NCBI GenBank assembly: GCA_965649825.1
Contig: OZ287704.1
Coordinates: 1 to 64,000 of the forward strand
DNA from: Penicillus capitatus
Taxonomy: Eukaryota; Plantae; Chlorophyta
DNA: 64,000 nucleotides
Reading direction: 5' to 3'
Shown here in pieces: positions 1 to 64,000 of the stretch (the stretch's first letter is position 1; the number at the start of each line of letters is the position of its first letter). Both the position numbers and the translations under genes were made by a program. The notes below the pieces were generated by a model that ran no database searches, was not told the DNA's origin, and saw only the letters and a list, made by a program, of their open reading frames with translations.

Positions 1-985
1 CGTATCCCTCTACTTCTCGTACATCGGCATCGTGCGGGAGCTCCTTCGCAGCATCAACTGCATCCACGTAGACGAACAGGCAAATCAGGCATCACTGGAG
101 CATCCGTATGCCGCCTACGCCATCCTGGAGGGCCACAGATCTCTCTGGGCCGAAGACACGAGCGTCATCTGCTTCAAAGGGAGCCACCTCCCTGTCGCCA
201 TTGTAGGAGTCCTCGGCCTGTTTGCCGCCATCTGCGGCATCCTGCTGATCATCTTCTGGCTGCCCCTCAATGCCAAGAACCTGACCAAGACAGGATTCGT
301 CTCGCGTTACTGGTTCTTATATCAAGCCTACCGCAAGACGTGGTACACCAATGCCTGGGAGTCCACTATCTTGACGAGGAAGTGTCTCGTTGCTGCCGTA
401 TTGGTGTTCTCGGCGAATCTGGGCGCGAGTCTCCAGGCATCGATGTGCGCCGGCATCCTCGTCATCGCCCACATGCTGCATTCCTGTTTCTGGCCGTTCA
501 GGATTCCAGAACAGTCACAGTTCGTACCCGTCTACGCTGGACGTGTCTTCGAGGTTCTCCGACTGCCGAGAATGGCGAATTTCTGGGTCGATTTCAACAA
601 CTCCGTCCATCTCAATATCTTGGAGTCGGGTTCCCTCTTCTCTTCCATCGTCGTCTTCTTCTCCGCCATCATCCTGCACGACGCCAATGCCTCCGTGGTG
701 GGCCGCAACTTCATGATCGCCTTCACCCTTGCGATCAATCTCACCTTCCTGCTGTTCATACTGTACCGTCTCTACGCCGGTTTGCATGTCCTGCTGGATC
801 TGAAGCTGGAAATCCGCAGCCCGACCTATATGGCGATCCACGAGAACAGGATGTGCATCTGGAGCTTCATATGCAAGGTCGCCGAGATTATCCGAACGAT
901 CAAGAACTGCGAGAGCGATGTCGAATGTGGTAAAGGCGAAGTGACGTCGGAGATGACTCTGTCGAGCATTAACGAAGACGCCTAG
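1..985 (+). CDS. 3' part (multi-pass TM domain) of a Pmp-repeat/Cys-rich/multi-TM surface protein, paralog 1; 5' end lies outside the window
   Basis: The frame is open from base 2 (VSLYFSYIGIVRELLRSINC...LWAEDTSVICFKGSHLP...FVSRYWFLYQAYRKTWY...AWESTILTRK...LNILESGSLFSSI...LYRLYAGLHVLLDLKLE). It is colinear with the C-termini of ORFs 4901-6127, 37534-38802 and 58095-59390. Stop TAG at 983-985. Confidence 0.9.
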   Translation, partial: VSLYFSYIGIVRELLRSINCIHVDEQANQASLEHPYAAYAILEGHRSLWAEDTSVICFKGSHLPVAIVGVLGLFAAICGILLIIFWLPLNAKNLTKTGFVSRYWFLYQAYRKTWYTNAWESTILTRKCLVAAVLVFSANLGASLQASMCAGILVIAHMLHSCFWPFRIPEQSQFVPVYAGRVFEVLRLPRMANFWVDFNNSVHLNILESGSLFSSIVVFFSAIILHDANASVVGRNFMIAFTLAINLTFLLFILYRLYAGLHVLLDLKLEIRSPTYMAIHENRMCIWSFICKVAEIIRTIKNCESDVECGKGEVTSEMTLSSINEDA

Positions 986-1219
986 ATTCATTCGTCCATT
1001 CTCACGTCCAACGCATACGACAAGAAGACAGATGTATGCGCATTCTTTCCTGCGTTCAAGAAGAAGAACCATCAGAGAGCGACATGAGCCCGTGCGTTAT
1101 TACCATAGTTCCTCGCATGGTGCGTTTTCACGACTCTCATAATCTAACCGACAGATGCATTCCCAATTTTTTGTTGATTTTGTTGCGGATCCGACGGAAT
1201 GATACTTTTTAAGGGTCGG

Positions 1220-3549: not shown

Positions 3550-3562
3550 CTCGTCAAATCGC

Positions 3563-4900: not shown

Positions 4901-7900
4901 TTAAGGGGGGACGGAATGCTCAGAGGACTGATCTGCCGAGACTGCGGAATGATCTGATGCGTCTCCTCCCACACATGTCCGACCATAGAAGGCGGTCAAC
5001 ACGAGGACTTTTCTGCTCAGACTGATGACATCCATGCGTCTCTCCTGCCTGGGAGAGATCTTCAGATTGTGCACTTCAAGTTTCAGGTCGACCACGATGA
5101 GGAGTCCACAGTAGAGACGATACAACCCATAGAGCAAGAACCCGATGTTCACGGCAAACGTAAAGATGATCATGCTGACGCGGCCTGGAGAAGTGGCCGA
5201 CGTATCATGGAGTACGATAGCAGCGAAGAACATAGTGATGGATGCGAAGAGCGACATCGATTCGAGGACATTGAGATCGATGGCATTGCTCATCTTGACC
5301 CAGGTGGCCGCCCATCCCGGCAAACGAATCAGCCGAAAAGTGCCGCCTGCATACTCGGGAGTGTTTTGGTGCTCCTCTGGGACTTTGAATGGCAAAATGA
5401 GTGAATGCAATGTGTGACAGATGACAAGGATGCCGACACACATCGCTGCTTGTAGTGTCGGTTCCAGATGAACGGCAAAGACGATGACGGTGGCGATCAG
5501 TGTTTTGCGGGCAAGGATGATCGATTCCCAGCCGTTTGTGTACCACTTCTTGCGGTAGGCTTGATAGAGAAACCAGTAACGGGCAACGAACTCCGTCTTG
5601 CGTCGGTTTCTTCCGTTGAGCGGCAGCCAGACAGCGATCCAGACGATGACGCAGAGCAGAAAGAACAGACCGACGATACCCGCAATGCCCACCGCCAGAT
5701 GTCTCCCCTCGTAACAAACCAGATTTGTATCTTCTGCCCAGACGTGTTGACCGACCGCCTCCGTAGCGTACTGCAGGTAAGGGTGGTCTGGGGAGAGGTC
5801 GGCATGGGAAGCCTGGATCTCGACGCAGTTGATGGCTCGGAGGAATTCTCGCGCAAGATCGATGTAGGAGAAGTAGAGAGCGACGATGCAGATGATGATG
5901 ACATAGGTGAAGAATCGCTGTCGAGCTTCCGCATCTGGCAGGCTGCTATTTCCCGACCGCATTCTGAGCAGATTGGTTACGAGACAGGCGAGCAGCAGCA
6001 CCAGCAAAAGGGCGACCAGAACGATCGCTGGTGTGCTGAGATGCAGCCACAGGGCGTTGGCGGAAGATGAGGTGTGATCTGCTTCGAAATGACATTCGTA
6101 TGGAACGGAGACAAGGAAGTTGGACAACCCGCCAAGACATCCTGGATGACACGTCCGTCACATCAGGGGCAGGGAGAGAGACAGAACCTTGCAGTTTAAG
6201 CAGTCCTTTCAGCACAGAATTCCAGTCCGTCTGCAGCCGCAAAGCGATGCTCGTCACTTGCAGATAGTTAATCAACAGCTGGAAAACGACAGTCGTGAAT
6301 GTGGCTGTCTGCCTCGTTGCCTGGCTTCTCACTTTGAGTGTTTCCGTTAGCTGAACGGTGGCGATGAGCTGCTTTGCAAAAATCTGCTGTGTATTGACGG
6401 TCACCGTTCCTGATTCGGCTGATCCATCTGCACAGCGATCGTTGGAGATGCCGTGGATGAAATGCACACCTGTGCGCTGCGAAGACTGCGGGGAATGGTC
6501 TTGTCGAGAGCTCGTCGTAGCCAACTGCTGAATCCCCCTCGGTCGCGTCCTCGTCACACATCGTAGCTCGTGTTTGACCAACTCAACGCGACTGTTCATG
6601 GACATCAGTGTCACGAGGCAATTCGCCCCGATCAGTATAAAGAGATATCCGCAGCTCAGCAGTAGCTGAAGGCTATTCTTGAAGTTCCCTTCGGGGCACT
6701 CTTTGCATTTTCGCGAATAAGTGTGACCGTAACCGTCTTGACATGACCCACAGAGCGGACCTTCATATCCTGTGGAGCACTGCTGATAATCCGCTGTCTC
6801 CATCGCCGTACTCTCTTGCCCATCCCGCCCGTCAAGGGCGTTCAGGTAAGATTGCAGTCTGGCACCGTCTTCGTAGAAGGCTACCAGACGTGCGCTTCTG
6901 CCATTGTAGGTGCAGGCATCTGGTTCGATGCACTGACGAAAGACAGGCGAGAAAGGAGTGGAGTGCCAGTATCCGTTCTTTGGCACCAGAGCCGCACCTC
7001 CACTGCATTCGGCGTTCTTCTCACAGCTCTCACACTTTTCCAGAAAGGGATCAAATCCGTACTGGTCGTGTGGGCACCTCTGGCAGATATTGACCTGATT
7101 GATCTCGCCTGGATAACACTCTCTGGTGGACAGCCCGACGTCGAGTCGGATACTCCGATCGCGTTCGCTGACGATCGTGAGTGTGGTGGAGACGTTGATA
7201 CCCCAGGCGGCTGTGTTGTTGATCACAGCAATGCCATTCGCTGCTCTGTACCTGAGGTCCCCAACCACGGCGTCCGACACCAGCACGATTTCCAGATTGG
7301 CATCGTCGACGCCTCGAACAATCGTCTGATTAAAGATGTCCTTCACCAGAATTCTGAGCTCCCGCGAGCATGACGCATTACGGGTGTCTTGGCAGGGAAT
7401 CCTCAACTCCTTTCCACTGGCGACGCGTTTCAACGGTCCGTTCCATCCTTCGATCACTAACGAGACGACATTGGTGGCGGCATCGGCCTCGTGAGCTACC
7501 CCATCATCCGATATCTCGTTAGCGGAGATATTCGAGCAGTACGATAAAAGCGATTCAGCTCTTGGAAGACTCCCTGTGAAGTTACGAGCGGTGACATGAG
7601 GCGCGTCGTCAGCACAAGCGACGGCAATTCCTTCCGGCAGACTTGAAAAGACGCCTCCTGCATAATCGGCTCTGTTCCGAGTTACCGTCACATTGGAGAA
7701 GACGAAGATCTGACAAGCGTCCAGACCGATAGCTATGGGGAAGCATGATTTTCTGTGGCCTTGATTCCAGTAGAGTGGATTCATGAACGCAGCAATAGCA
7801 CCTGGAGAGAACGATGAAGAAAGGTCGTTTCTTTACATAGGAAGGTACCTCCTACGACGGCCTCGTTCTCCATAAGCAGAAGATTGCCGAAAATCACTTC

Positions 7901-10062
7901 GACGGCCGTAAACAGCTGCACGTCCAAGAAGGATACACCAATGCCGCCTCCGAATCCCTCTTTCGCATTGGTTATGTACTCGAGCAGTGAAAAATTCCCC
8001 AGATGCCTCGAATAGTTCGGCGCCCGTTCGTGCTCGAAAGATAGTGGCGTGTAGCGTTGACTGGCATCCTCTAACGCCTTTATTTCTGAGGAATCGACCG
8101 GCAGTGCTCGGTTGTTGATAAACAAGCTGTCCGTAATCTGCATGACAGATTCAGTATGGGCATCTACGAATTGTGCACTTCACTTGCAAAAGAAGAAGTG
8201 GGTATAGTCCAGCACGAAAGTATAGACCGCCTCCTGTCACAGCCGTGTTGTTTCGAAAAATCGTTGGCCGCAGATCATCGGACACCACGTAAAAGGCAAC
8301 GACGCTCGCGATATGCATGCCGCCGCCAACATAGGCACGGTTGTTCTCGATAAGGAGGCCATGCAGCACAGCGACTCCGGTGCTTTCCTGGATGGTCATT
8401 GCACCTCCGCTGCGCATGGCCACATTGTCACGGAAGACCAAAGCGGCGAGATTAGTATCGCCTAGGCACATCGATCATCTGCTTGCTGAAGGAGAGATCG
8501 ATGCACTTACCTGCACTGTCAGAAAAGAGCCCTCCACCATAAAGGGCCGTCGAATTCTCGATGTAGCTGAGAAGTGATTTGTCTTCTGGGTCGGTGTCGA
8601 AATTCAGTATGGCATTCTGGTTCACCTCAATGGATCCACCGTAGAGAGCTCTACTGTGCAAGAAGGTCGTGTTGACGATAGTGAGATGCGAGGTGTCTTG
8701 GGAAATCGATCCACCTCTTCTCATAGCGATGTTCGATCTAAAGGTGCAGGTGGAGATTCTGTGCGGCCCCGTCACAGCTGAGAAGGAGCGAAAACTGAGG
8801 GCTCCGCCGTTGACGGCAACGTTGTCCAGGAAGGATATGTTCTTGAGCGTCCAAGCTCGAGAAGATGAATCCAGAGCTTCATGAGCAAGTGCCCCGCCGA
8901 CGTGCGGCGCCCGCAGAAAAGGCTCTGGCAGCTCAAAGCCATGCTGTGTCTCGCAAATAGCTGCATTTCGTTCAAAACGGGAATCGTCTATTCTGTATCT
9001 CCTCGCGATCTCGGACATATCCATTTGATTGCATAGCACAGCAATGGCACCCCCTCCTCGACAGCCGAGATTGTCTGAAAAGACAGATCGGCGGATGGAG
9101 ATTTCCATAGGACTGTGCGCAAAAACGGCACCGCCACGGCCGGCTTCGAGCGATGAAAAATTAAACAAATCCAGTGGACCAGCGTTTAAAGCTATCTCTT
9201 CTCCTTCTTCCGATCCAGCAGTATTGTTCTCAAATGTGGACCCCTCGATCGTCAATGTCGTATTCTGTGAGTTTCGGAAATAGACGGCGCCTCCAGTGAC
9301 GACGGCCGTGTTCTTGGAAAAGGTGGATTGGTTGATGACGATATCCGCATCCTCTGCGAAGATCGCCCCGCCCTTAGAGGCTCGGTTATGTTCGAATGTA
9401 CAGGATTGGAATCGGAGAACGGGTGATGCTGGACACACGTTATCAGCCGCACAGGCCTCTGCTCGGACAGCTGCTCCATGAATCTCGCCTTCTGTTGCGC
9501 CGTTGTGTGAGAAATGCACATTCTCAAATGTGGCTCTCACTCTTCGACGTCTGCCACGCTCGACGACGACGGCCTCTTCGGTACAGTGAGTGAAATACAG
9601 AGAGGATATTCGTGTGTGACCTCGCCTGTGTAAGACAACGTCCTCTCACGAAAGTGTGAGACAAAATCGAAGACGTACTGGATTCTCAACGCGTTCCGCT
9701 GTGCTCTGCGGGGACACCGAACGACGACAGGTGTCTCGCGCGCGGCTTTGAGTGTGACATTGCGCACAGCGATGATAAGAGTGTCCGTTAAAGCGATTTC
9801 CGCGGCGTCCACAGCGACGGTCTGTCCTGTCCGCAAAGTTAGCAACGCTTGTCGAAGCTCCGTTTCCGTTCGAACGGTAACAACCTGCGCATTCTCCTCC
9901 CGAAAACGCTCTCCTTGACGCACTACATTTTAAAGAAATCGACGCTCTCAGTCTGTATCACTGCACGACGAGCACGCACGAACCTCTCTGCGATAGAGAT
10001 AGGGGAAGGACAAAGAGGAGAAGCAATGCACAGCGGTAGTGTGTAACAGGCATCATGAGCAT
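4901..10062 (-). CDS. Pmp-repeat beta-helix / Cys-rich / multi-TM surface protein, paralog 2 (full length, multi-exon)
   Basis: Signal-peptide-like exon MLMMPVTHYRCALLLLFVLPLSLSQR at 10062. Repeated FxxN...GGA[I/V] motifs in 8452-9540. Cys-rich CYPGE...GYWHSTPFSP...CSTGYEGPLCGSC in 5946-7784, then LLINYLQVTSIALRLQTDW and the TM domain in 4901-6127. Confidence 0.88.
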
Positions 10063-37533: not shown

Positions 37534-40500
37534 CTAAACTGCGGATTCCATTTCTACTGTTCCCGAAGTCGTACGTCCTTGATCGCTCTTTCCTCCCATG
37601 AGCACATCTACCTGTATTTTAACGAGATGACATAGTTTGGCGAAGAGATTTGCGGCTCCCAGTTCGTTGCCTTGAACCGTAACAAAATTTGGATCGATCA
37701 TTTCGAGCTTCAGATCGACGAGGACATTCAATCCGCAGTACAGACGATACAACATGTAAGAAATAAAAACAATGCTGACAGCAAAAGCAAAAATAATCAT
37801 GACCAGTGCTCCGAGATCTGTGGCGTTCGGATTATTGAGTATAAGAGCAGAGTAGAAAATAACGATAGAGCAGAAGAGCGAACCGCTTTCGAGCGCGTTC
37901 AGCGTAATTTTGTTGTTGAGCAGGGTCCACTGTTCAGCTAGCTTGTGTATATGCAGGCAACGGAAGAGCGATCCTGCATAGTGTGGGACATAGTAATGGC
38001 CTTCTGGCCTCTTGAATGGTAGGGCCATTGTATGAAAGCCTTGAAAAATAATAAGCACGCCCACACACATGGAAGCTTGGAGATCTAAATCAAGATGGAC
38101 GGAATATACAACCACCGCCGCAATGCACGCTTTACGGATCAGAATCATTGCCTCCCACGGACTCCGATACCACTCATCGCGATACGCTTGATAGATGAAT
38201 CCGTAGCGTGAAACGAAGACGGGGCGTGTCTTGGACCCTTGGTGAAAAGGCATCCATAAGACAATGAATGTAATGATGCCGAGGGCCATGACGAGACCGG
38301 CAATGCCAGCCATGGCTGTGGGGAGATGGGTATCGTCGAAGCAAATGAGGTTGGTATCTTCCGCCCAGACATTATCCCCGCGGCGAATGGCACATGAACG
38401 GTAAGGATGGTTTTCGTCTTCCTCTTTCCCCGTCTGATTCTTGATTTTATCCACTTCGACGCAGTTGATAGCTCTGAGCAGTTCTCGAACCGTGTCGATG
38501 AATGAGAAGGAGACGGTGACCAAAGCAATGACGACGATACTCGTCACGAGATGCTGAGATGTCGAGGCGTTCTGTCTGTTCTGTGCAGTGCTCGTTGTCA
38601 AATGCCGTGTGAGCCAGAAGACGGTGTAGACCACGACGAGAGCGATCGCCACAATGACTGGCGTGAACAGACGCATCCAGATGGCGATGACGGAAGGCGG
38701 CCATGGATATTCATCATCGAAATTGCACTCGAAGGGAGCAGTAAACGCTTCACTCGTAACGCCAACGAAGAGACCTATGGTATCACCGTACCTGATGATC
38801 ATCTAACCGTCGATTGTTGGGAGAGGCACCTTGGACGGAGAGGAGATTAGAAAGGGCAGATCTCCAATCTACTGGCAGTCTGAGAGCGATGCTCGTGATC
38901 TGAAGGTAGTTGATCAGGATCTTGAGCGTCTCCGTCAACTGCACAGCGGCATCTAGGTTCTGTTTCAGAAGGGCGTTGTACTCGACTTCGGATCGGTCTG
39001 TCACGCCTGTCGTCCCACTGACTACAGGCACAGTGCATATATGAGTGATGCATCCTGCCGATAGAGATCATTGCGATCACACCTGTTCTGCCTTGTAACG
39101 CATGCATCTCACGAACCATGTTCTCCGTCACTGGCGGACTGCGCTTGAACGCCGGGCGATGCTGGACGGCATCCTTCCGTGCTTCGAGACGCGCCAGTTC
39201 AATTCGCATTCTGGTGGACAGCAGTGTGACAACACAATTGATGCCGATCACCACAAATGTCCACAGAACGGAAAGAACAGTAAAAAGACGTGTATACTTT
39301 ACTGTCGACGGACATGATTTGCACTCCCCGCTGAAAGAGCGACCAAAGTGTTGCAAACAGGATCCACAAAGAGGCCCATCGTATCCCTCGACGCACTGCG
39401 GATAGTCTGAGAAGTTCATCGGCATTCGCGTGTCTGGATGGGTCTCCGCCAGCATCGACTGAATCTCATCCCACTTAGCTTTGAGTCTCGTGCTGTTGGC
39501 TGAGTACTGTATCAGTCGCTGCGTCCTCTCTGTGTATTTGCATGCTGTTGAACGGACACATCGGTTCATAATGGGAGAGAAAGGGGTCGAGTGCCAGTAG
39601 CCATCGGCAGGCACGAGTGTGGCATTGCCATAGCACTCTGCATGTTCCTCGCAGGGCAGGCAATGTCCGTGGATGTTAAAACTGTACGTTCCTCTGTCGC
39701 ATGGATCGCATTCATCCCCTCTCTTATTCACCTCTCCCGGCAAGCAATCTCTGACAGAGAACTGAACCGTCACATTAACGGATTTGTTGTTTTCGCTCTT
39801 GACGACGAGTGTGGTGCTGCTCATGTTGACGCCGGTGACTTTGGTATCGTTGATGACGATGATACCCTCCTGAGCTGTGTATCTCAATCGCCCTGTCACC
39901 TGTTCGCTCTCCAACGAGACGCTGAGATCTGCCAAGCACTCGTCTCAGGGAGGCAGATGTTAGGCAGGAGAACACGGACCTGCATCTGGTATACCTCCGC
40001 GAATGGTTTGCCCAAAGGCATCTTTGACAGCGACTTTCAGAGGATACCGTTTGATCTGCGTCGAATTGCCATCTGTCCAACGGTACTCGAGCTTATCTCT
40101 GCTGGCGAAGTTTTCTAAGGAACCACGTTGATGTTGGATGACCAGCGATTCGGCTTGGGTTCCGGCATCTGCTCCATCCCTGCCGCTCTGATCCTAATGA
40201 CAAGCTGTCAGGGCACGCCGCCAACGACATCCATCTGTACTTTAAGGGCATTTTGGCCGATGTCGAGACACAGCAGGTCTTTGTATTGATCGAGTTTGAT
40301 CGTGTTGTTCAGCTGTTTCCGAAAAATCTCTCTGAATGTCGCGTTCTTTCCCGGACGGTCCAGATCACATGTCAAAAGGATTCTCTCTGGATGTGCCGTA
40401 AACACACCGCCGGCAAATTTGGCTTTGTTCTCGGCAATGGTCACATTGCTGAGGACAAATCTCCGACAGAACTCAAATCCAATGACCGCTTGTTGACATC

Positions 40501-43343
40501 TGGAATCCGCAGTGCCATTCCAATCTACCTTGGAAAACTGAACATAGATGCCTCCTGTCACAGCCAGAAGAGATCACACATAGATACCGAGCCCTGCACA
40601 AGATCGAACCTCCGACATCTGCTTCGTTGCCATCAATCACGACATTCTGCATGACAATGTCTGAGATGGTAAAGATATGGATATCAAAGAGATTGAGACA
40701 GATGCCGCCTCCCTGGCCATTCTCCAGCACTGTCAGCTGCCGGGCGATCCACGCTTCATCTACGGTGCTCAGAGAAGAGAAGTTTTTCGGCCATCCCGTT
40801 AACCGTAATGTGTAATCTTCCCCTTTGCGTACTAAGGCGGCGATATCACTCTTGTCATAGTGTCGCACTTGGTTCCCCACAAAGCGGGTATCATTTATCA
40901 AGATGTCCAGTGTGATGTAGTGTCCGGGTTCGAGATACATTCCACCTCCGTTCACTGCCGAATTATTTCGAATGATTGTTGGGCGTCCTCTGTGTGATGT
41001 CATTGTCAAATTGGCAGTCGCATAGATATCAATCCCACCACCCACAATAGCACAGTTCTTCTCGATGACGACACCGCGAAGCACCACAGGATGCTTGGCA
41101 TCGTCCACTCGAATCCCTCCACCACTGCGTATGGCTTTGTTGTCTCGAACGACCAGAGCACTCAGATTTGACCCTCCTACGAAGACAGATGCAAAACAGC
41201 TGCTTTGAGAGTAAGAGGGAAGGAATCTTACTGTCGAGCTCGTAGAGAAGGATGCCGCCTCCGTACAGGGCAGTGTTGTTTGAGATGACGGAGATCTTGG
41301 ATAAATCTGCCGAATCTTCTTGGACACTCAGTGAGCTTCCATGCCATATCATCAGACCACCTCCTCCTCTCGCTATGCCTTCGCTAATGTTGGTCGCGAT
41401 CAGCACGATATGGGCATGCCGTGCCAGAATACTCCCTCCAGCAATCATGACAGAGTTTCTCTTGAATATACAGTCTGTGATATTTCTGTCTACCATCGGC
41501 GCTCCGCTAATGTACAGGCCTCCTCCCGAAACGGCCGCATTGTTCAGGAACTGCGATCGCTGGATCGTCCATTGCAATGGTACATCATCGTCAACCACAT
41601 GTGAAATGGCCCCTCCTGTGCCGACAAACGATTCGAGGATATCCACCGTGATGTGCTCTCCACAGCAACTTTGAATGGAGTTGTCGCTGAACACAGAATC
41701 GGACACATTAAACACCGCAGCATTCTCCCAGCCTTCCTCTCGCTGGCCATTCCACACACTCACAGCAGCCCCTCCTCCTGGTGCACGATTGAGATGGAAC
41801 GTGCATTTACTAAGGGTCATCCTCTCAGGGTTTAATGCACAAATGGCGCCGCCTAGACTGTCTTTCTTTTGAGGGACGGTACTCGGACTTGGATAAAGCA
41901 ATGTTAAGTTGAGATCCTTCACGTCCCAGGTGACGTTATTTTCGGTAAATATTGAGTTTCTGATGTCGAGTTCCGTTCTTGGCCTTTTCACGAAGATGGC
42001 ACCTCCACTAACGATTGCTGTGTTTCGCAGAAATGTGGAGTTGTGTATTATCAGATAATAATCTTCGCCATAGATAGCTCCTCCTTGATAAGCCAGGTTC
42101 CTTTCGAATACGCTTGAGACGATCTGCAGTCTGGGTCTGAACACAGAATCGGACACATTAAATACCGCAGCCTTATCCCCGCCTTCCTCTCGTTGGCCAT
42201 TCAACACACTCACAGCAGCCCCTCCTCCTGGTGCACGATTGAGATGGAACGTGCATTTACTAAGGGTCATCCTCTCAGGGTTTAATGCACAAATGGCGCC
42301 GCCTAGACTGTCTTTCCTTTGAGGGACGGTACTCGGACTTGGATAAAGCAATGTTAAGTTGAGATCTTTCACGTCCCAGGTGACGTTATTTTCGGTGAAT
42401 ATCGACTTTCTGATGACGAGTTTCGTTTTTGGCTTTTTCACGAAGATGGCACCTCCACTAACGATTGCTGTGTTTCGCAGAAATGTGGAGTTGCGTATTC
42501 TTAGATGATAATCATCGGCATAGATAGCTCCTCCTTGATAAGCCACGTTCCTTTCGAATACGCTTGAGACGATCTGCACTCTGGGTCTGAAGCATGGTTC
42601 TCTTATGCACCCCAGCATTCTTATTGCCGAGCCATTCATAAAATACTCTTTTCTGCCGTTTCTAAGAAACTGGATGCGCCTGAGGGTAACGGAACGATGT
42701 CCCTGCTGTCCCTCGTTGCGGGATCCCTCGATCACGATGGCGGATGCGCCAATGCACTTCGTAAAATGCAAATCCGACAATTCTATTCCATGACCCCTAA
42801 ACAGCAAAACGGTTCATCTTGCATGGACGCGCACGCGTCTTTCGTCTTTACCCACCTCAAAAGAAAAGCACTTTGCGCGGGTGGACAATAAATCTTCGTC
42901 TCGAACTCGGGATTTCCTCTCAAGATAAGACGCCGGGAGTCAACAACGACTGTCTCTGTAAGTTGTAGCCGCGTCGCATTGAGGAACACGACGATAGGGC
43001 TCTCTGAAACGACGGACAAATTGCCATGAAGCTCAGCTTCGGAAGAAACAGTCACGTAGTCCTCCTGAATGCCGTAACCTGAAATCGACGTCAACTTCGT
43101 CCTCCCTACATGTCCGTTATACACGTCAAACTGCCAGAAGGATGCAAGACGCGTTTCGGAGATTGGAGGAGGGAGACGCGACAGCAACGTCTGGCGTCAA
43201 GTCAAGCGACAGAACAACTCCCAAAAGAGGGAGTCCGCTGCTGTACAGGTTACGTATCGCGTAGGAGGATTACTTAATGGCGCGGCACATCCAATTCGTG
43301 CTGCGCAGAGGCAGAAGGCGAAGAGATAACACAGGATGGGCAT
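37534..43343 (-). CDS. Pmp-repeat / Cys-rich / multi-TM surface protein, paralog 4 (full length, with internal 150-aa duplication)
   Basis: Signal-like MPILCYLFAFCLCAARIGCAAP, GGAI repeats in 41029-42807, CLPGE...GYWHSTPFSP...CVEGYDGPLCGSC in 38847-39935, TETLKILINYLQITSIALRLPVDW and the TM domain in 37534-38802. Confidence 0.88.
41689..42591. repeat. tandem direct duplication, 2 x 450 bp, in frame (150 aa), inside paralog 4
   Basis: ACACAGAATCGGACACATTAAA at 41691 and 42141; CTGGGTCTGA at 42131 and 42581. A by-eye alignment gives 23 mismatches in 450 bp. Confidence 0.97.
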
Positions 43344-54196: not shown

Positions 54197-57100
54197 ATGT
54201 CGAGGCACCCTGTCCGCCATAAACTCCTGCCGTTCTTCTTGTTGACGCTCTTCTGCCGCTTCCACTGTACGTTCTGCCGGCAACCTTAACGATTTATGGT
54301 TCCCTCCAGGCGACGGCGACGACGCATCTTCGCAACGCACGACGACGGTCGTTCGCAATCGAGAAGAACTGCGAGCCGCTCTACAGAACCGCATTCCACA
54401 TCAAAGGCTCATCCTAGAAGCAGAGGAATTTCATTTGACAAAGGCGACGGTTATCGATGTTCCAGGCATTACAGTGGAAGGACGACATGGATCGCAAACG
54501 TCGATTCGTTGCGCAGAGACCCAAAGCGCATTCATCGTTAAGTAAGATCACCTCATTGCTGCATCGTATGGTCGGTCTCACCAGCGACATCTGTACAGAA
54601 GAAACGAAACGCGATTCATCTCTCTGACCTTCCATCGATGCCAAAATCGATCCGCTGTGACGATTCAACCGGAAAAGGGCAAAAGAGAAGAGACAATGGA
54701 CGTCTCCTTTGATCGTGTCCACTTTCTGGAGAACGGAAAGGAAAGAGATCACATCCTAGGCGCCGCCATTCGAGTGGATGGATGCCAAACGACGGCGTGC
54801 GCCAAACCACATCTCCTCTTACAGGAATGCGTCTTCGCCAACAACACCGCACTTCGAGGAGGAGCCATCTACGCTGAGGATACAGATCTAGAGATCCGCA
54901 ACGCAACGTTCCGAGGGAATGCGGCACATCTGACTGGCGGCGCTCTCTATGTTCACAACCGACGCGATGCTATTGTCAATATCAGTGATTCACTCTTCGA
55001 GAATAACGTAGCGCGTGCAGATCCACGTCTGCATCGTCTATCAGAGGAGGAGCTCCTGGTCACGAAGAACGAGACGTTGAAGACATCGGGCATGGGAGGC
55101 GCCATCTTCGTGCATCGTCCTGTTGGCTTTTCGATCCGAGCCTCGAGCTTCGTAAACAATACGGCTTGTAGAGGAGGCGGCGCAGTGGGGGCCTTTCATG
55201 TGATGCTCTCTTCAGAAACCAACACCTCGTTCGCTTTCTCCATCGTCGATTCTGTCATGGAAAGAAACGTGGCGTACTGTGGGTCGCAAGAAGATGCGTT
55301 CAATTTCGATCTGCTCGGCAGTGAAGTGCATTATGGAGGGGCGGTTATGTATGTGTCCCTGGATGGGTCGCCCAATGCGTGGTTACTGGCCAACACCTCT
55401 TTCGTGGGAAACCGTGCCCGTGTCGGTGGGGCGCTCTCCATACGATCGGCGTTTGCCTCGACTGTGGAGCATGATCTTATTTCGTGCACGTTCGATGAAA
55501 ACGTCGCTCTCAGAATCGGAGGATCCGTTATCGTCCACTCAGCACATCTCCGAGTCATGAGCACCATCATCCGGAACAGTCGATCGATTTATGGCGGCGG
55601 CCTCACCATCTGGCAGACCTCATCTGTGGTGTTCTCGCCCAATCCCGTCAATACCTCTGCCTTAAGCTCCATCGAAAGCAACGTGGGGAGCTTCGGAGGC
55701 GGAATCCTGTTGAGCAACGGAGGTAGAATCCTGCCCATTTGCTGCCATTCGCCATTTTGTGTGCAGGCCAGCTGGATCTCTCCTCCGTCGTCATCCGCAA
55801 CAACACGGCTTACCGAGGGGGAGGGGGATTGCGTATCGACAACACACAGCAACGCATCGTCATACGAGGTGTGCTGTTTGAAGACAATCGTTCGTTGCTT
55901 GGAGGAGGTGTCATGATCGATGACGTCATGAGCATCAACTTCACCGCTTTCGATGATCAACCGACGGTTATCCGACAGAACGTCGCAGCAGTGGGGGGAG
56001 GTGTCTATTACGAACCGGGTCGTGTTCCCTATCTCCGTCTAAATGTTGACCACCCCTGAGACACACCATGTCGCTGATCTGTCTGCCGTAGATTGAGGAT
56101 ACTGAATTCATTGAGAACAGTGCTCTGGCTTTAGACACTCCAGAGGTTCAGCATTTGCTGAACGAGAGTCAGCGATATTCCCCGCTGCCGGAAGAATTCA
56201 TTCGAATTCCGCAGCTCTCGGGGCATTTGGAAGCGTTCTCGCTGTTGAGATATCTGGCGCATGTCGAAGAAGGACACGGTGGAGGGATTTGTCTGAATCT
56301 CAAAAATCTCAACCTCTTTTCCATCGCCGAAATTTTCTTTCAGAACCTATTCATGACGCAGAACACTGCCGTCGTCGGCGGTGCGTATCGTGTATTCCGA
56401 GAGTGCTGTGCAGGAGGCAGCTGTTGCGTAGGTGGCATCTCTGCACACATGACAGATCTGTACTGGAATAAAGGCAACAGGTCATCCTGTTTCCCGGCTG
56501 CATTTGGCCTGGACACGTGTCAGAAATTTGTGCTCGTTTATGCGACGATTATAGAAAACAGGGCGGCGTTTGCAGGAGGGGTCTTCTCTACTCTGGCAGA
56601 CGGCATCATCGTTTCGTGCACTCCTGGCGGCGACGTGTACTTCAATGCTCGAGATCTCGTCGCCGAAGATCTGGAAACCGATCCTGTGCGGCCCTACTGC
56701 TCGACGGTTGAGAACAACGGCGTTGTGAATGGGACCGTCCTGCAGGGTGCCAATGCTGGAGGCACAGCTGAGTATCTGGCTGTCGATGGATGGAATGGTC
56801 CACTGAAAACCGTCGCCAGTGGAAAGCATCTGGCCATCCCTTGCAAGAACAATCTCAACGATTCCTGTTCGCAGCAACTGCGCATCATTGTGCGGGACAT
56901 CTTTAATCAGACGATCTCTCGAGGAGTGGATGATGCCAGTCTGGAGATCGTCCTTCAGTCCAGAGACATCGTTGGCGATGTGCGGTACCGAGCGGACCGC
57001 GGTATCGTTGTGATCAACAATACCGTTGCCTGGGGCATCAATGTCAGCAGTACATTACGCATTGTCAGCGAACGAGATCCACGGGTCTCTCTCGAATTGG

Positions 57101-59390
57101 AGCTGTCCACAAGGGCGTGCTATCCTGGAGAGATCAACCAAACAGACCTCTGCCAGATATGCCCGGTCGATCAGTATGGCTTCATTCCATCTCTTGGCAA
57201 GTGTGAAGCGTGTGAAGATCATGCAGAATGTAGTGGAGGAGCTTCCCTTGTGCCAATGGAAGGGTACTGGCACTCGACACCGTTCTCGCCTGTTGTGCGA
57301 AAGTGCATCACGACGGGTGCCTGCAAATACGAAGGCAGGATGGAGAGATTGGATCGGTATTATGCAGATCCGCAGAAACTGGAGCAAGACATTCGGGACT
57401 TGGATGCCTATGTACAGGAACAGGCACCGGTCCCTGAGTTTCTGGGCTATCAGCAGTGCACAGATGGTCATCAAGGCTTGCTCTGTGGGTCTTGTCAACC
57501 TGGGTATGGGCATTCCTATACAGGAACGTGTCACAAGTGTCCGAAGAACGGCACTGTCCTCATCATCCTCGTTTTCTTGTCCAATGCTTGGCTGTTTCTG
57601 CTGATCGGAATCAACTGCGCGTTCACGCTGCTTTCCACGAAGACCCGGGTGGATTTGGTCAAGCATGAGGCCCAGACTGTCGCCAAGGCGAGACCCAGGA
57701 CCGTCGAGCGAGCCGTCGAGCACATCCATCGTTCCCTCACCGTCACTTCCAAACTCTCCGCCGCCGCCACAGGTTCGTCGAGATCTTTGCAAAAACTGGC
57801 AGTTCATGTGCCGCGCTGCACTTAGATCGAACCATTTCACTCCCGTTTATGGATACAGACACACAACTGCTCTTTGCTCAGCAGCTTATCGCGACGGTTC
57901 AACTTTCAGAGACGCTGAAGGTGTGTGATCTCGATCGACGACACTTGGCGTGACGATCACTGGCTGCAGATCTTGATTAACTATCTCCAAGTGACGAGCA
58001 TAGCTGTACGTTTACAGACCGATTGGAATGCTTTCTTCGGCGGCTTCCTTTCAGCACAAGGTATGCACCGAGCTTCTGAGACAGCCGAGACGAAATGAAG
58101 GGCGTTTCTGTCTGCGCAGCCAGTTTTGCAGGAGTATCGAGTTCTGTCATCGTTGCTCCATACGAGTGTAATTTTGATGCCAGTAGCGTCCCGCCCTCCG
58201 TGGCAGCTCTCTGGATGCGGTTGGCAACACCATGGATTCTGTTACTTGCCATGGAGTTGGTTTTTGTGATCAGCTGGTCACTTTGGCGTTTACGCACGCG
58301 TGTCAGCTTTCCCGCTTCCCCTGCAGATCATCTCAACAAAACAAGTCTATTCACCTACGTGATCATCATCTCTATTGTATCGATGTATCTCTCATACATC
58401 AGCGTTGTGAGAGAACTCCTTAGAGCCGTCAACTGTATGAAGATTAAGGAGGAGGTAGGTCATCTCCCAGCAGATCATCCTTACCTAGACTACGCCATCG
58501 AGACAACGGATCAGAAACTGTGGGCGGAAGATACAGATCTGGTATGCTGGAAAGGAAGCCATCTTCCAGTTGGCATCGTTGGCGTCATTGGATTGATCAT
58601 TTCACTCTGCGGTATCATCTCTATCATCGTGTGGCTGCCTCTCCACAAGAAGCACTTGACCAAGACTGAATTTGTTTCCCGCTACTGGTTCATCTATCAA
58701 GCTTATGGTAAAGAATGGTATCGCGTCTCATGGGAGTCCACCATTCTCACGAGAAAGGCACTCATTGCCGGTGTTATCGTCTATTCTGCGCATATGGGTC
58801 CTGGACTCCAGGCTGCCCTCTGTGCCGGAATTCTGAGCCTCTTTCATATGTTACACTCTGTTATCTCTCCCTTCAAGGTATGCAATCAGTACAAGTGCAC
58901 ACCGGAGTATGCTGGCAGCGTTTGGAGAACCCTGTGTCTTCCGAAGCTGGCGCCTCGATGGATCGCCTTCAGCAACTCTGTCCATCTGAATACCTTGGAA
59001 TCCGTTTCTCTGGCATCGACGATCATTGTCTTCTACTGTGCGATTGTGTTGAATGATGCATCTTCAAGCCCCATTGGTCGTGGTCTGATGATCGCTTTCG
59101 CATTTGCAGTGAATTTCGTATTTGTGCTGTACATGCTGTATCGTTTGTATGCTGGGTTGCATGTGCTGGTCGATCTGAAACTGGAGATAGATCATGCAGC
59201 GTTTATGGCTGCCAGTAATAATTCTATGAGCCCTCTGCATCTTCTCGTCAAGATCTTGGTTCTGATTCGAGACAAAATGACTCCTTGTCCTGCCTGTGGC
59301 AGTCAAGACAACGTTACCTTCTCCCCTAGAAACGCCGCCTCTGATGCACGAGAGTGTCCAGAGTCGTCGGAAATTGTCCCGGATCCTTAG
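54197..59390 (+). CDS. Pmp-repeat / Cys-rich / multi-TM surface protein, paralog 5 (full length)
   Basis: Signal-like MSRHPVRHKLLPFFLLTLFCRFHC, GGAI repeats in 54657-55916, CYPGE...GYWHSTPFSP...CTDGHQGLLCGSC in 56155-57825, ILINYLQVTSIAVRLQTDW and the TM domain in 58095-59390. Confidence 0.9.
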
Positions 59391-59802: not shown

Positions 59803-62800
59803 ATGCCGCCGCGGGTTCTGAGCCTATTCGCCTTGGCGTTATGGCTATCGTCTGTTTTTGCGAAAGGCGGTAAGAAAGCATCAAAGAAAAGGCGAACTTA
59901 GGATGTTTGGTCACAGTTAAGGGACAGTCTCGTGTACTGACACAAACGAACGATTCAACCGAAGTGAAGACTGTCTCCACTGAAAGAGAGCTCAATGACG
60001 CATTGAACGCTGGGCGTCGGGAAAGAAGTCTGAGACTGGCCGTCGACGAGATTCGACTCTCGGAGCCATTGGTGGTTGACGTGCTTCGCGTTTCCATATC
60101 GGGAGCGGCAAACGGCACCGTCATTCACTGTCCGCCGACAGACGGTGCGTTCGTTATCAAGCAAGGCCGCCATCTCTGTATTGACGTACGGCTAAGCCAA
60201 AACCTGTCTTTGCAGGAACGGGAGCGTGTGGCTGGCATCCGTGACCATTACCGGCTGTCATTCGCATTCTGCCGTACAGATAGAATCGAAGAGCGAGCCA
60301 ACCGATGGCGTTATTGACGTCGTCTTCAAAACGGTGTACTTCGTAGAGAATGGAAAAGGTGGCGACATCGAAGCTGGAGCGGCAACGCGCGTCGAGTCCT
60401 GTGGAAAGGGCTCTTGTGTGCGACCCGTGGTCGAATTCAGACGGTGTCGTTTCGATCGCAATCGAGCTGCTATCGGCGGAGCTATTTACGCGACGGATTC
60501 CAAGATCCGCATCAACGACTCGATATTCGAAGAGAACGAGGCCAGCCTTTCTGGCGGTGCTTTGTTTTTTAGCAATACCGATGATGCAGAGTTGACCATC
60601 GAAAATTCCACTCTTCATGGGAACCGGGCTTTAGGTCAAGACAAGCCTCGCGAAACGAAGGCGAGAGCACTCCTTCCGTCGACAGAAGACATCCCGGACA
60701 TGTCTGGCATGGGCGGTGCCGTTTTCGCATACGATCCTGCCCGTCTATACGTAAACGCGACCAACTTCACAGATAATAGCGGATGCCAAGGAGGTGGAGC
60801 GATGATCGTTGTTCAAGCGGCGGCTGGAGCAGCAAACAACGGCACGCACAGTTTCAACATCTCGCACGCATTGTTCGAAGGAAATGCTGCGTACTGTGAT
60901 GCTAAAGATGCCTCTCGGCTGAATGATTATTATAACCAGATGTATCATGGCGGAGCCTTGATGCAAGAGTCCTCCGATTCTATGGTCCATGACTGGACAA
61001 TTATCCATTCCGAATTCCGGCAAAACCGTGCAGCGCTTGGCGGCGCTATCAGTTTTCTTTCCCGTTTGAGGTCGGATGTAGAGCAGAGTGTCATTTCTTG
61101 CAGCTTTATTGAGAATGATGGACTGGTCGCCGGCGGCGCGATTCTGCTGGACGCAACTCGCTTAAAGATCGTGCGTACGGAGATCCGAAACAGCAGATCG
61201 GTTTTTGGCGGCGGTCTCGTCGTCAGACGCAATGCTTTCCTGACGATCGTTCAAGATCCAAAATACCCTGCAGCAAATAGCAGCAGCAGCATCATCGAAG
61301 GAAACATTGGCGTATATGGCGGCGGCATGTTTGTAGATTCTGGCGGTGGGTGACTCTCACCTTACTCAAGACTCGACTCATTGTACTTCGTAGGCGTCCA
61401 TTTAGAAGCGCTGACTGTGCGCAACAATATCGGATATCGAATCGGTGGCGGCTGCCGATTCTTGTCCACGGATCGGCCTTCTTTCCTTCGCGGCGTCCGA
61501 ATCGAAGGCAATCAAGCTTTTGCAGGCGGTGGCATTTCTTTGGGCACGATCGACAATGTCACCTTGGTTGGACTGGGAGAGAAATACAGTGTCATTGCAA
61601 ACAACACGGCAACAGTTGGAGGCGGCCTATATTACGAAGCAGGAGAATTCTACATCTCCTTCATTCGAGTAAGGACCCAGGCAAATAGTCTCTTCGCATA
61701 ACAGACCCGTCGCAGATAGAAGAAACGTTGTTCATTGCCAACAGAGCCTTATCGTCGACGAGTTCAGAGATCGTGGCGTTCAATCGCGAGGCGGAGAAGT
61801 ATCACCTGAAGTATTCTAAAGGGGTAAACGTCTCTAATATCAACGAAGAAACAGAACGCTCCTCCGTTATGGAATATATCAAAACAAGAGAATCGGGACA
61901 TGGCGGCGGCATCAGCATCAACGTATTTCGTACTCGGCCATTCATCATCCACGAAATCGCTTTCCAGAACGTCACGGTTGTCGAGAATGCAGCCATCGTT
62001 GGAGGTGACTTCGTTTGGGAATGTATCTTTGGCATCTTCATTGCTCAGGTGGAATATCTGTTCAGACAAAGAAGGTTCACAAGAATGTCGCCAGCAACGT
62101 TTCCTGCTCCAGTGCTTCGCTTGGTTTCGATACGTGTCAGAGGATTGTGTTCCGCAACGTTACCGTCGCACGGAACAAGGCAGAGTATGCAGGTGGACTG
62201 TTTGTATCTTCTCTGGACTACATGACATTCTCGTGTGGTCCCAACGCGACATGGGCAAGCGATACGCACGAGCCATCGAAAGCCATGGTGGATCAACGGC
62301 GACCCTTTTGCACAGAGATCTCAAACAATACCTTGATCAATGCATCCGCTACAGAAGCGGCCGATATTGGCACACGAGTTGCCAAACTGTCTGTCAAGGG
62401 AGAACACCATCAGCTGAAGCCGATGGCCAGCGGCGACACACTTGTCGTTGTGTGCGAAGACATCCAGAATGCAACCTGTAACCGTTCCTTGGAGATCCTT
62501 GTGAAGGACACTTTCGGTCAGCGCATTGAACAGGGACTCGACGATGCCAACCTGGAACTCACACTCTCCTCTGAAGCCATTCTGGGCGACCACCGATACA
62601 AAGCCATCAGAGGGACGGCTGTGATCGACAGTACTCAGGCCTTTGGTGTGAATGTCAATAAGACACTGATGATCGCTGCTGAGGAAAACCGAGACGTCTA
62701 CGTCCAGCTAGACCTCACCACAAGGGCGTGCTATCCAGGAGAAGTCATTCAGTCAAATCACTGCGCCACCTGTGCCGTTGACAAGTATGAATTCGATCCA

Positions 62801-64000
62801 TCCCAGGAGAAATGTCGAAGCTGCGAAAAAAATGCACGATGCCGTGGAGGGGCTGCGCTTGTGCCGATTGACGGGTACTGGCATTCCACTCCATTCTCGC
62901 CCGTCTTCTGCAAGTGCATCGATCAGAAGGCCTGCCAGTATGGAGGAAGGACAGACAAGCTCATGGCTTTCTATGAAAATGCTAGTGCATTGACGTCGCG
63001 ACTGAGTGCTCTGAATAAATTTATCGAAAAAGGAGGTCAGATGCCAGATTTCTCAGAATACCAGCAGTGCCTTGAAGGGTACGATGGGCCGCTCTGTGGT
63101 TCTTGTCAGCCGGACTACGGCCATTCGCACTCCTATGGATGCGAAGAATGTCCACAGGAGAAGACGACCGGCGTCCGCTTGACATTCGTAGCGGTATGGC
63201 TTTTCGTTGTGATCGGGTTGAACTGTGTCGTCACGTTGATGACCACCAATACCAGAATTGCATTCGCCAAATACGAACGGCAAGCAAAGATCATCACCGA
63301 AACAAGGGTTCTTCAAAGAACGGAGCACATTCAGGCCGCGCCTGTGCGAATCCCTCATCCTTTATCGGGCGAATCAGGTTTGTTAACGAACGATGTCATG
63401 CGCCTTCCCTTGGCCACCAGTAGCACAACCGCAGTTGCCGCCGCCACCCAGAGAAGACTCTATGCTCAGCAACTCATGCTTGCCGTTACCTTGACAGAGA
63501 TTCTTAAGGTCATGCCCGGCACGCACTGAACAGTTTGGAGACTCTGTTTCAGATTCTGGTCAACTACTTGCAAGTCACGGGCACTGCCTTACGCTTACAG
63601 ACGGAATGGACGGGGCCGCTTCGTATCCTGTTGCAGTTCGAAGGTAATTGCTGGTCAATCATATCTAGTCCTAAAATCGTGTTGACTCAGCTGGGTGGGT
63701 CGGATTCCTTGACGCCTTCATGTCGACTCCATTCGAGTGCGGTCTGGAAAAGGGTATCGCACCCGCATCCGTTTCTGCACTGTGGATGCGATTAACCATG
63801 CCGTGGTTGGCCCTGGCGGCTATAGAACTCACCTTTGTACTTGTCTGGCTCTGCACGCAACGCTATCGACACATGCGGGAGTTTCAACTCCCAACCTGCC
63901 TCATAGTGATCGCTCTCGTGTCTGTGAACTTCTCCTTCATCGACGTCACCAGAGAGCTCATGAGAGCCGTCAACTGTGTGCAGATCGCAGAGATGTGCAC
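59803..64000 (+). CDS. Pmp-repeat / Cys-rich / multi-TM surface protein, paralog 6 (runs off the window end)
   Basis: Signal peptide MPPRVLSLFALALWLSSVFAKG, GGAI repeats in 60226-61353, CYPGE...GYWHSTPFSP...CLEGYDGPLCGSC, TEILK|ILVNYLQVTGTALRLQTEW and finally VTRELMRAVNC at the window edge. Confidence 0.9.

Follow-up and report, generated by a model that had tools for sequence, protein, structure and literature searches.

What kind of protein is encoded by the six related genes that crowd a single 64,000-nucleotide stretch of DNA (the window, for short), and what might such a family do? The DNA is nuclear and comes from a siphonous green alga, a giant single-celled seaweed of the order Bryopsidales, nearest to Caulerpa: BiP shares 88% identity with its counterpart in Caulerpa lentillifera, against 77% for Bryopsis and 75% for Ostreobium, and the window has eukaryotic gene structure and housekeeping neighbours. 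The ER genes BiP, GRP94 and OST3 adjoin the family copies.

An earlier note on this DNA had placed six paralogs here, on both strands and partly in tandem, and had put their share at roughly 40%. Searches by tblastn with pieces of copy E and with its spliced model return homologous blocks at all six places, about 23.7 kb in sum, or about 37% of the window. Signal-like hydrophobic N-termini with start codons, as well as the stop codons, lie exactly where the note had set the gene ends. The copies, lettered in window order, and their parts are as follows.

1..985, forward strand: copy A (first aligned base 2), the C-terminal ~330 aa with most of the multi-TM domain and the cytosolic tail, cut by the window start
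4901..10062, reverse strand: copy B, full length, from open reading frames, Pfam matches (Chlam_PMP, Beta_helix, DUF7630) and domain mapping onto E
~7481-9539, 7136-7480 and 6695-7135, reverse strand: copy B ectodomain (Pmp beta-helix, stalk and Cys-rich module, in that order)
6611-6694, 6335-6610 and 5068-6334, reverse strand: copy B membrane part (TM1, loop and Flc/Pkd2-like TM domain)
34842..37181, reverse strand: copy C, signal peptide, Pmp beta-helix and helix C-cap, in tandem with D and downstream of it
37534..43343, reverse strand: copy D, full length, from Pfam, tblastn, a signal-like start and domain mapping onto E
~40166-42710, 39764-40165, 39311-39763, 39227-39310 and 37695-38922, reverse strand: copy D Pmp helix, stalk, Cys-rich module, TM1 and TM domain
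41687..42591, reverse strand: tandem duplication within the copy D Pmp beta-helix, 450 bp, in frame, 2.0 copies, 94-95% identical
54197..59390, forward strand: copy E, full length; the spliced model has 8 exons, encodes 1609 aa and has GT..AG introns of 43-71 nt
54197-54266, 54310-54541, 54599-55722 and 55767-56044, forward strand: copy E exons 1-4
56092-57772, 57826-57920, 57970-58060 and 58132-59390, forward strand: copy E exons 5-8, with the junction 57772/57826 (loop region) and the acceptor at 58132 the least certain points of the model
54687..56757, forward strand: copy E Pmp-type right-handed beta-helix, residues ~131-790, Chlam_PMP E 3e-18
56758-57102 and 57103-57543, forward strand: copy E stalk and Cys-rich module, where DUF7630 matches weakly, under its gathering score (E 6e-5)
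57544-57627, forward strand: copy E TM1 (hydropathy peak 2.68, residues 1057-1075), followed by a loop to 57969
57970..59390, forward strand: copy E multi-TM domain (predicted TM2-TM9) and cytosolic tail, from alignments, profile search and AlphaFold
59803..64000, forward strand: copy F, in tandem after E, leaving the window end within the TM domain
~60304-62368, 62369-62713, 62714-63154 and 63155-63235, forward strand: copy F Pmp helix, stalk, Cys-rich module and TM1

Four copies have the full architecture, in the order signal peptide, Pmp-type beta-helix, stalk, Cys-rich module, TM1, loop, multi-TM domain. The spliced coding sequence of E is open throughout and colinear with the orthologous locus L004; copy B opens with the signal-like start MLMMPVTHYRCALLLLFVLPLSLS at 10062; and the truncated copy A is 56% identical to E residues 1273-1570 by tblastn. 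The layout described in the earlier note thus holds for the full copies, by Pfam and by mapping onto E, but not for C, which is a beta-helix-only derivative. C has a 653-codon open frame at 35231-37189 (Chlam_PMP E 4.5e-25) and is 26% identical to E residues 43-670. Because stalk, Cys-rich module and TM domain are all absent before the stop at 34842, which ends its last exon, C is presumably a secreted or truncated product.

The ectodomain is of the Pmp type, as the note had proposed from its repeats. In copies B, C, D and E, Pfam finds Beta_helix as well as Chlam_PMP (E 1e-17 to 1e-25), and the beta-helix of E contains six GGA[ILV] motifs (shuffle mean 0.1, maximum 2) and 11 FxxN motifs (shuffle mean 2.4). 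There are 32 Cys and 21 N-glycosylation sequons in the E ectodomain. The loop after TM1, on the other hand, is variable, K/R-rich and presumably cytosolic, with zero Cys and zero sequons. These features and the conserved Cys in outward-predicted loops are the indicators for the predicted topology of nine TM helices (1 + 8), with the N-terminus outside, the C-terminus inside, and a loop of ~80 aa parting TM1 from the bundle.

The bundle itself has about 50 invariant residues, including polar ones within helices, and the motifs quoted in the note (INYLQ..W, ECNFD, WAEDT..C..HLP, RYWFxYQAY..WE) are all present and invariant or nearly so in an alignment of 21 sequences. No Pfam family matches this domain directly in the window copies, and none of these copies matches PF06011 itself, even at E<=1. 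We then consider the relatives: a profile of the window TM domain collects 1256 cluster representatives at E<=1e-3, and PF06011 is matched by 23 of 51 TM-only and 10 of 29 full-length relatives tested, being the sole Pfam family with matches in more than two of the 51. Relatives at TM-profile E 1e-47 to 1e-25 exceed the PF06011 gathering score, among them P0065 of Ostreobium, at 49.8 bits, and P0096 of Bryopsis, at 32.8 bits; the PF06011 stretch of P0065, 1318-1590, overlaps the window-profile stretch, 1283-1531. Since the relatives match PF06011, transitive homology supports the "TRP/Flc-like" label of the note, and the TM domain is probably a divergent member of the PF06011 ("TRP") superfamily. 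In an AlphaFold model without TM1 and TM2 (pLDDT 87.5, pTM 0.83) the last exon forms seven long helices, while an earlier model that included TM1 and TM2 was poor (pLDDT 57). Foldseek finds nothing like the confident model in PDB (best E 0.69, TM-score <=0.19), and so gives no support to the fold of a GPCR, of a canonical TRP or of a known transporter, which the note had listed for checking. To our knowledge, no structure has been solved for the PF06011 family, and its channel activity rests on a few fungal studies.

The fungal PF06011 proteins compared (S. pombe Pkd2, S. cerevisiae Flc1-3/Yor365c, C. neoformans Flc1 and A. nidulans TrpR) appear to share a homologous membrane domain with the window copies, transitively, through the algal relatives. 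In the fungi the ectodomain is small and of the ML-like/TRP_N type (Pfam PF14558), whereas the window copies carry a unit of ~1000 aa made of Pmp beta-helix, stalk and Cys-rich module, have the 80-aa loop between TM1 and the bundle, are too diverged for a direct PF06011 match, and form tandem arrays. The predicted layout is common to both: a signal peptide and an extracellular N-terminal domain, then some nine TM helices and a cytosolic C-tail (PMC9727806). Yeast Flc1-3 and S. pombe Pkd2 belong to PF06011. Canonical TRP channels and polycystin-2 resemble the window proteins solely in the Pfam name "TRP" and in being proposed to pass Ca2+ and to sense mechanical force: these are 6-TM tetrameric cation channels, the window TM model superposes on none of them in PDB, the sole TRP in its Foldseek list is TRPM5 (E 6.7, TM-score 0.10), and helix counts differ too.

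On the ectodomain side, the likeness is to chlamydial Pmp autotransporters, which have GGA[ILV]/FxxN repeats, Chlam_PMP matches and a predicted right-handed beta-helix, the coils of which serve in adhesion (PMC11166332, PMC10715098, PMC6701047). Unlike these, the window proteins have introns, a signal peptide and an alpha-helical TM anchor, and no autotransporter beta-barrel. Trichomonas vaginalis has an expanded family of Pmp-repeat proteins as well, also eukaryotic. Those studied are reportedly far smaller, the candidates being of 67-68 kDa, and cross the membrane once before a short tail with endocytic motifs; they are not known to have the Cys-rich module or a PF06011-like multi-TM domain. 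They traffic through the secretory pathway, with a proposed role in adhesion (PMC6701047).

Colinear full-length homologs are found in Caulerpa, Bryopsis and Ostreobium. The note had spoken of several protists, but the organism itself and every named relative (these three, Chlamydomonas eustigma and Gonium) are green algae. It was right in calling the family uncharacterised: literature searches found no described member, and the sources label members hypothetical. In a neighbor-joining tree, built without support values and with the named species represented solely by 50%-identity cluster representatives, the window paralogs form one clade adjoining three Caulerpa proteins, which suggests the lineage-specific expansion that the note had anticipated.

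Paralog identity to E is 30-37% in the Pmp helix, 40-64% in the stalk, 45-58% in the Cys-rich module and 49-59% in the multi-TM domain, so that divergence is greater in the ectodomain than in the membrane part, as the note had claimed; across paralogs and orthologs together, conservation peaks in the stalk and Cys-rich module. The source of diversity is old tandem duplication and internal repeat duplication, such as the 450-bp one in D (Tandem Repeats Finder score 1649; frame open across both copies; 150 aa of added helix coils). The "diversifying repertoire" of the note therefore stands as far as diverged paralog ectodomains and the recent duplication in D are concerned, but not in its selection: the dN/dS comparison of ectodomain and TM region that it had suggested gives omega of 0.09-0.19 across all domains of E against the orthologous locus, indicating purifying selection in every domain and in the same range as the neighbours OST3 (0.23) and MutS (0.05-0.22). 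Copy F, at 0.37-0.48, evolves faster than E and is still below 1. This pattern better suits sensors of different fixed specificities than an arms-race repertoire.

Our tentative reading, which we consider quite possible, is that an ectodomain which binds wall or matrix is coupled to a membrane module that is Pkd2/Flc-like and handles calcium. The products would be large multi-pass glycoproteins with a ~650-aa Pmp beta-helix facing outside (or the lumen), in which the beta-helix, stalk and Cys-rich unit may have replaced the fungal ML-like ectodomain. The beta-helix would bind a polymer of the cell wall or extracellular matrix; the rigid stalk and the Cys-rich module would relay force or ligand occupancy to the Flc/Pkd2-like domain, and this domain would gate or regulate Ca2+ flux upon turgor- or wound-induced strain of membrane and wall. 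Tandem duplication in the algal lineage may have enlarged the family, with ectodomains then diverging, partly via internal repeat duplication, and each paralog now probably maintained by purifying selection. Such a mechanism would mirror the stretch response of S. pombe Pkd2, which passes Ca2+ under membrane stretch when reconstituted; Flc1 homologues are described as regulators of Ca2+ homeostasis (PMC9600462). If so, the family could plausibly sense strain or wounding at the cell surface. The family, itself unstudied, combines a Pmp-type ectodomain with a predicted nine-helix membrane domain distantly related to the fungal Flc/Pkd2 proteins.

The recognition of microbes or carbohydrates put forward in the note is pure inference. 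In its broader form, a pure adhesin or recognition repertoire (for microbes, mates or substrates) under positive selection, with the membrane domain a mere anchor or signalling scaffold, would be in keeping with the adhesin role of Pmp repeats in Chlamydia, the increased adhesion conferred by Trichomonas Pmp proteins (PMC6701047), the divergence of the ectodomain as the most variable part among paralogs, the 150-aa internal duplication in D, the elevated omega of F, and copy C, which could be secreted. We judge it unlikely: omega of the E beta-helix is 0.19, with no 100-codon window above 0.47, as in housekeeping neighbours, and an anchor alone needs no eight-helix bundle with so many invariant residues, intrahelical polar ones included. 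These same polar residues are compatible with a solute path, and the protein might instead act in the secretory pathway, as an Flc-like ER/Golgi carrier or regulator, its lumenal beta-helix handling wall polysaccharide precursors. Yeast Flc proteins are described as flavin carriers required for wall biogenesis. The flavin carriers Flc1-3 are in PF06011, and Pkd2 is found in ER and plasma membrane (PMC9600462, PMC11333956); the ER genes next to the copies point weakly the same way. Such a role is nonetheless improbable, given that a Cys-rich, sequon-heavy and paralog-divergent ectodomain of ~1000 aa is more typical of surface proteins, and that the C-terminus of E has no ER-retention motif.

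A membrane-anchored wall-modifying enzyme, with the beta-helix as a pectate-lyase- or GH28-type lyase or hydrolase, is hinted at by the Beta_helix (PF13229) matches and by a distant relative auto-named "Probable pectate lyase C" in UniRef, yet it is very hard to credit: at E<=1 the E ectodomain has no lyase or glycoside hydrolase match in Pfam, only Chlam_PMP and a weak NosD, and GGA[ILV]/FxxN repeats are the signature of non-enzymatic Pmp passengers. The "adhesion-GPCR-like" comparison of the note, which would set an adhesive ectodomain upon a seven-helix domain coupled to G proteins, draws on layout alone, a large ectodomain ahead of numerous TM helices, and is close to refuted by nine predicted helices, one of them set off by the loop, by the absence of 7tm, GPS and GAIN from the Pfam matches, and by GPCR chains that enter the Foldseek list at chance level (E>=8, TM-score <=0.22).

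Two copies can be tied to individual database entries: copy A is protein P0008, with an ortholog in another species, P0007, that is 85% identical, and the last exon of D is P0032. The orthologous locus L004 contains the F gene in full, with a further copy after it.

tblastn searches, for which we used pieces of copy E as well as the spliced 1609-aa model of E (8 exons) that serves here as the reference, recovered all six copies of the family that an earlier note had placed in the window. The copies are:

A, 1-985 (+), cut by the window edge
B, 4901-10062 (-), hydrophobic signal-like start at 10062
C, 34842-37181 (-), hydrophobic signal-like start at 37181
D, 37534-43343 (-), hydrophobic signal-like start at 43343
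E, 54197-59390 (+), hydrophobic signal-like start at 54197
F, 59803->64000 (+), hydrophobic signal-like start at 59803, cut by the window edge

Together they take up ~37% of the window and form two tandem pairs, D-C (minus strand) and E-F (plus strand); elsewhere on the contig, outside the window, there is an additional paralog (P0012). The surroundings are gene-dense eukaryotic nuclear DNA with a G+C content of ~52%, in which long open frames are split by short introns (43-71 nt, GT..AG). Interspersed among the family copies are housekeeping genes for nucleoside diphosphate kinase, a GNAT acetyltransferase, protein prenyltransferase alpha subunit, CAND1/TIP120, an exportin, BiP-type Hsp70, Hsp90, a ubiquitin hydrolase, a MutS homolog and OST3. 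The introns, the eukaryotic housekeeping neighbours and the algal top matches rule out a bacterial origin. The ER BiP (Hsp70) is 88% identical to its best named match, from Caulerpa lentillifera, 77% to Bryopsis, 75% to Ostreobium and ~74% to Volvocales, so that the source is a bryopsidalean siphonous green alga, to which Caulerpa is closer than Bryopsis or Ostreobium.

The full architecture attributed to every copy (beta-helix, Cys-rich repeats and a multi-TM domain) needs one correction: copy C consists of a signal peptide, a beta-helix and a C-terminal cap, followed by a stop. C, located directly downstream of D, is a helix-only derivative, presumably secreted or decaying; it could be a secreted decoy-like form or a degenerating duplicate. 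Identity to E is lowest in the beta-helix (30-37%) and higher in the stalk (40-64%), the Cys-rich module (45-58%) and the multi-TM domain (49-59%). The TM motifs singled out earlier (INYLQ...W, ECNFD, WAEDT...C...HLP and RYWFxYQAY...WE) are indeed invariant or nearly so in an alignment of 21 sequences.

The ectodomain of E consists, from N- to C-terminus, of a signal peptide, a short N-terminal cap, ~650 aa of Pmp coils, a 115-aa stalk and a 147-aa Cys-rich module, with 32 cysteines and 21 N-glycosylation sequons in the whole. Copies B, C, D and E match the Chlam_PMP family of Pfam with E-values of 1e-17 to 1e-25, and likewise match Beta_helix; GGA[ILV] and FxxN motifs are well in excess of the shuffled expectation. 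These repeats are common to the window copies and the Pmp autotransporters of chlamydiae. The latter, however, end in an autotransporter beta-barrel, in place of which the window copies have an alpha-helical TM bundle; no Autotransporter match was found in the family copies with Pfam, and they are therefore not Pmp autotransporters. The Cys-rich part has a sub-threshold match to DUF7630, and a PDB sequence search with the stalk/Cys-rich region returned nothing meaningful. In copy D, 450 bp of the beta-helix are duplicated in tandem and in frame (41687-42591, two copies in exact register, 94-95% identical). This is a recent internal repeat expansion, from which it follows that the length of the beta-helix changes by duplication of internal repeats.

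Pfam scans matched no family to the TM domain of the window copies. In particular PF06011, the Pfam "TRP" family that contains yeast Flc1-3 and S. pombe Pkd2, was found in the window TM regions neither at E<=0.1 (copies E, B, D and A) nor at E<=1 (E, B and D), and a PDB sequence search with the TM-domain profile produced no match. We compared the same profile to 1.84 billion cluster representatives and found 1256 proteins at E<=1e-3, 62 of them at E<=1e-30. They include a relative from Ostreobium (P0065, E 1.3e-47) and one from Bryopsis (P0096, E 7e-30), both of which are above the gathering score of PF06011; in the Ostreobium protein, the stretch matched by PF06011 overlaps the stretch matched by the window profile. 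PF06011 matches 10 of 29 full-length and 23 of 51 TM-only relatives, and is the sole Pfam family matched by more than two of the latter. From these matches of the relatives we conclude, by transitive sequence homology, that the window TM domain represents a diverged branch of the PF06011 superfamily, and it is in this sense that the earlier label "TRP/Flc-like" was right. The N-terminal domain of Pkd2 lies outside and its C-tail in the cytosol (PMC9727806); a similar arrangement, with about nine TM helices, is predicted for the window copies. The ectodomains are different: PF06011 proteins have an ML-like/TRP_N domain, to which Pfam finds no match here, and the window copies have Chlam_PMP/Beta_helix repeats and the Cys-rich module instead.

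Hydropathy, AlphaFold models and the distribution of sequons, Cys and Lys/Arg residues predict nine TM helices (1 + 8, with the INYLQ helix counted), the N-terminus outside and the C-terminus inside. In E, the first helix is strongly hydrophobic (residues 1057-1075) and is followed by a basic loop of 80 aa with neither cysteines nor sequons, and then by the conserved region; the conserved cysteines sit in predicted outward-facing loops. The AlphaFold model of the last exon of E, built on a 51-sequence alignment (pLDDT 87.5, pTM 0.83), has seven long helices, of which helices 2 and 3 are joined by a structured loop bearing the invariant NC...WAEDT...C...H motif. Polar residues conserved in the wider family, H156, Q239, N299 and E302 in last-exon numbering, are located within or at the ends of helices, which we read as compatible with a putative conduction or binding path. 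Foldseek comparison of this model to PDB gave no match at E<=0.001 (best E 0.69, TM-scores <=0.19). Another model, of a 580-aa region that includes the first TM helix, was built on a 21-sequence alignment and reached pLDDT 57; its Foldseek matches are noise. The canonical six-TM TRP fold finds no support, as there is no Ion_trans or PKD_channel match in Pfam and the confident model has no fold match in PDB; the latter also argues against a known transporter fold. The family provides, with confidence, the model of a membrane fold for which PDB has no counterpart.

The best full-length matches are from Caulerpa lentillifera and are colinear over ~1500 residues at ~36% identity; others come from Bryopsis sp., Ostreobium quekettii, Chlamydomonas eustigma and Gonium pectorale. 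Each is labelled hypothetical or has an automatic name ("TRP C-terminal domain-containing", "Adhesin-like" and similar). Family members are already present, unannotated, in public algal proteomes. We found no paper on the combination of a Pmp beta-helix with a PF06011 domain and nothing relevant on DUF7630 or PF02415 in algae, and the family goes unmentioned in the paper on the Bryopsis genome.

A second assembly contains an orthologous region that is colinear with 48233-64000 of the window at 83.6% nucleotide identity and includes MutS, OST3, E and F. Past F it has at least one more tandem copy (17877-21173 of the orthologous locus, L004), so the array probably extends beyond the window end. 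The dN/dS values against the orthologs, from protein-guided codon alignments, are as follows:

E, whole gene 0.18; beta-helix 0.19; stalk 0.09; Cys-rich module 0.18; TM domain 0.15
F, helix block 0.48; middle block 0.37
OST3 (neighbouring gene), 0.23
MutS pieces (neighbouring gene), 0.05-0.22

In 100-codon windows along E the ratio stays at or below 0.47, and both values for F are below 1. Evolution of F (59803-64000 compared to L004 12005-15799) is two to three times faster than that of E, next to it in the tandem, and amino acid identity to the ortholog is 68% for F and 87% for E, which indicates unequal constraint within a single array. A neighbour-joining tree of TM domains, computed without support values and with the named genomes represented only by 50%-identity cluster representatives, unites window paralogs, their orthologs from the second species and metagenomic copies in one clade; it adjoins three Caulerpa proteins, and other Bryopsis, Ostreobium and Caulerpa proteins branch deeper. 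This grouping points to an expansion within this lineage, which took place before the two sampled species separated. On the whole, the paralogs are old, have diverged from one another and are individually conserved. Of the two-part pattern that the earlier note had set against its idea of a diversifying repertoire, near-uniform purifying selection is what we see in E, and a lack of lineage-specific expansion is not what we see.

In siphonous green algae (Caulerpa, Bryopsis and Halimeda among them) a single cell measures centimetres to metres and survives wounding by very fast responses, for which we know of no sensors. Reconstituted fission-yeast Pkd2 passes Ca2+ on membrane stretch, and Pkd2 shapes the Ca2+ spikes of osmotic shock and cytokinesis (PMC9727806). 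Flc1 homologues are described as controlling Ca2+ homeostasis (PMC9600462), and Pmp repeats as forming beta-helices that act as adhesins (PMC11166332, PMC10715098, PMC6701047). By analogy, the beta-helix would bind a wall or matrix component, the rigid stalk and the Cys-rich module would couple it to the Pkd2/Flc-like module, and that module would handle Ca2+ under strain. We are highly confident of the architecture and homology; this mechanism we offer tentatively, at slightly less than an even chance. With its tandem expansion, and with a presumed wall- or ligand-binding beta-helix attached to a relative of the stretch-activated fungal Pkd2/Flc module, the family is a concrete, testable candidate for a sensor behind the wound responses. 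It also extends PF06011 proteins, studied so far only in fungi, to green algae, with an entirely different ectodomain. Should the channel idea fail, the family remains a large, conserved, unannotated class of algal surface proteins.

Several other explanations, which we consider less likely, share parts of the same evidence. A repertoire of adhesins, with the TM domain as a passive anchor, draws on the same properties of Pmp repeats; a Flc-like carrier of the secretory pathway draws on the relationship of the TM domain to the Flc proteins. A wall enzyme might also be built on a beta-helix; no lyase or glycoside hydrolase family of Pfam, GH28 included, matches the ectodomain of E at E<=1. The adhesion-GPCR-like receptor of the earlier note, which the layout of a large ectodomain and a helical bundle had brought to mind, is not borne out: nine TM helices are predicted, there is no 7tm_2 or GPS match in Pfam, and the few GPCR chains found by Foldseek appear, together with TRPM5 (E 6.7, TM-score 0.10), only at the chance level of E>=6.7.

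The strain-responsive Ca2+-handling mechanism may be extended to a more specific proposal, which we consider improbable. In giant coenocytic algae the copies would be the sensors of wall strain or wounds: with the beta-helix tethered to the xylan/mannan wall, tearing or turgor loss would pull the stalk and open a nine-helix module, Pkd2-like and permeable to Ca2+, whose fold has no solved representative, and the paralogs would differ in the wall polymer or body region that each reports.

Some observations concern the rest of the window. tRNA and Rfam scans of 1-64000 produced nothing at threshold. The G+C content has its minimum, 0.45 (vs ~0.52), at 10001-12000, upstream of copy B and around the prenyltransferase alpha gene. 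Two ORFs with bacterial-type Pfam matches, 32143-32706 (-) to the YdjM inner-membrane protein and 47260-47838 (+) to DUF711, the latter just at threshold, lie in otherwise eukaryotic surroundings. The genes for BiP-type Hsp70, 26538-28696 (-), and Hsp90, 29025-31637 (+), are head-to-head ER chaperone genes with ~330 bp between them; the former product ends in HVEL, and the latter, with a last exon that ends in KDEL, is GRP94-like. This arrangement suggests a common bidirectional promoter, possibly for the unfolded-protein response. An ORF matching NAD-GH (PF10712) at 28241-28810 (+) is antisense to the Hsp70 gene, and we take it to be the familiar spurious antisense-Hsp70 frame and not a gene. 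On a contig of another assembly (L001, 10964-17371), a family member adjoins an ankyrin-repeat gene and a large gene with NACHT plus HEAT repeats, an NLR-like architecture.
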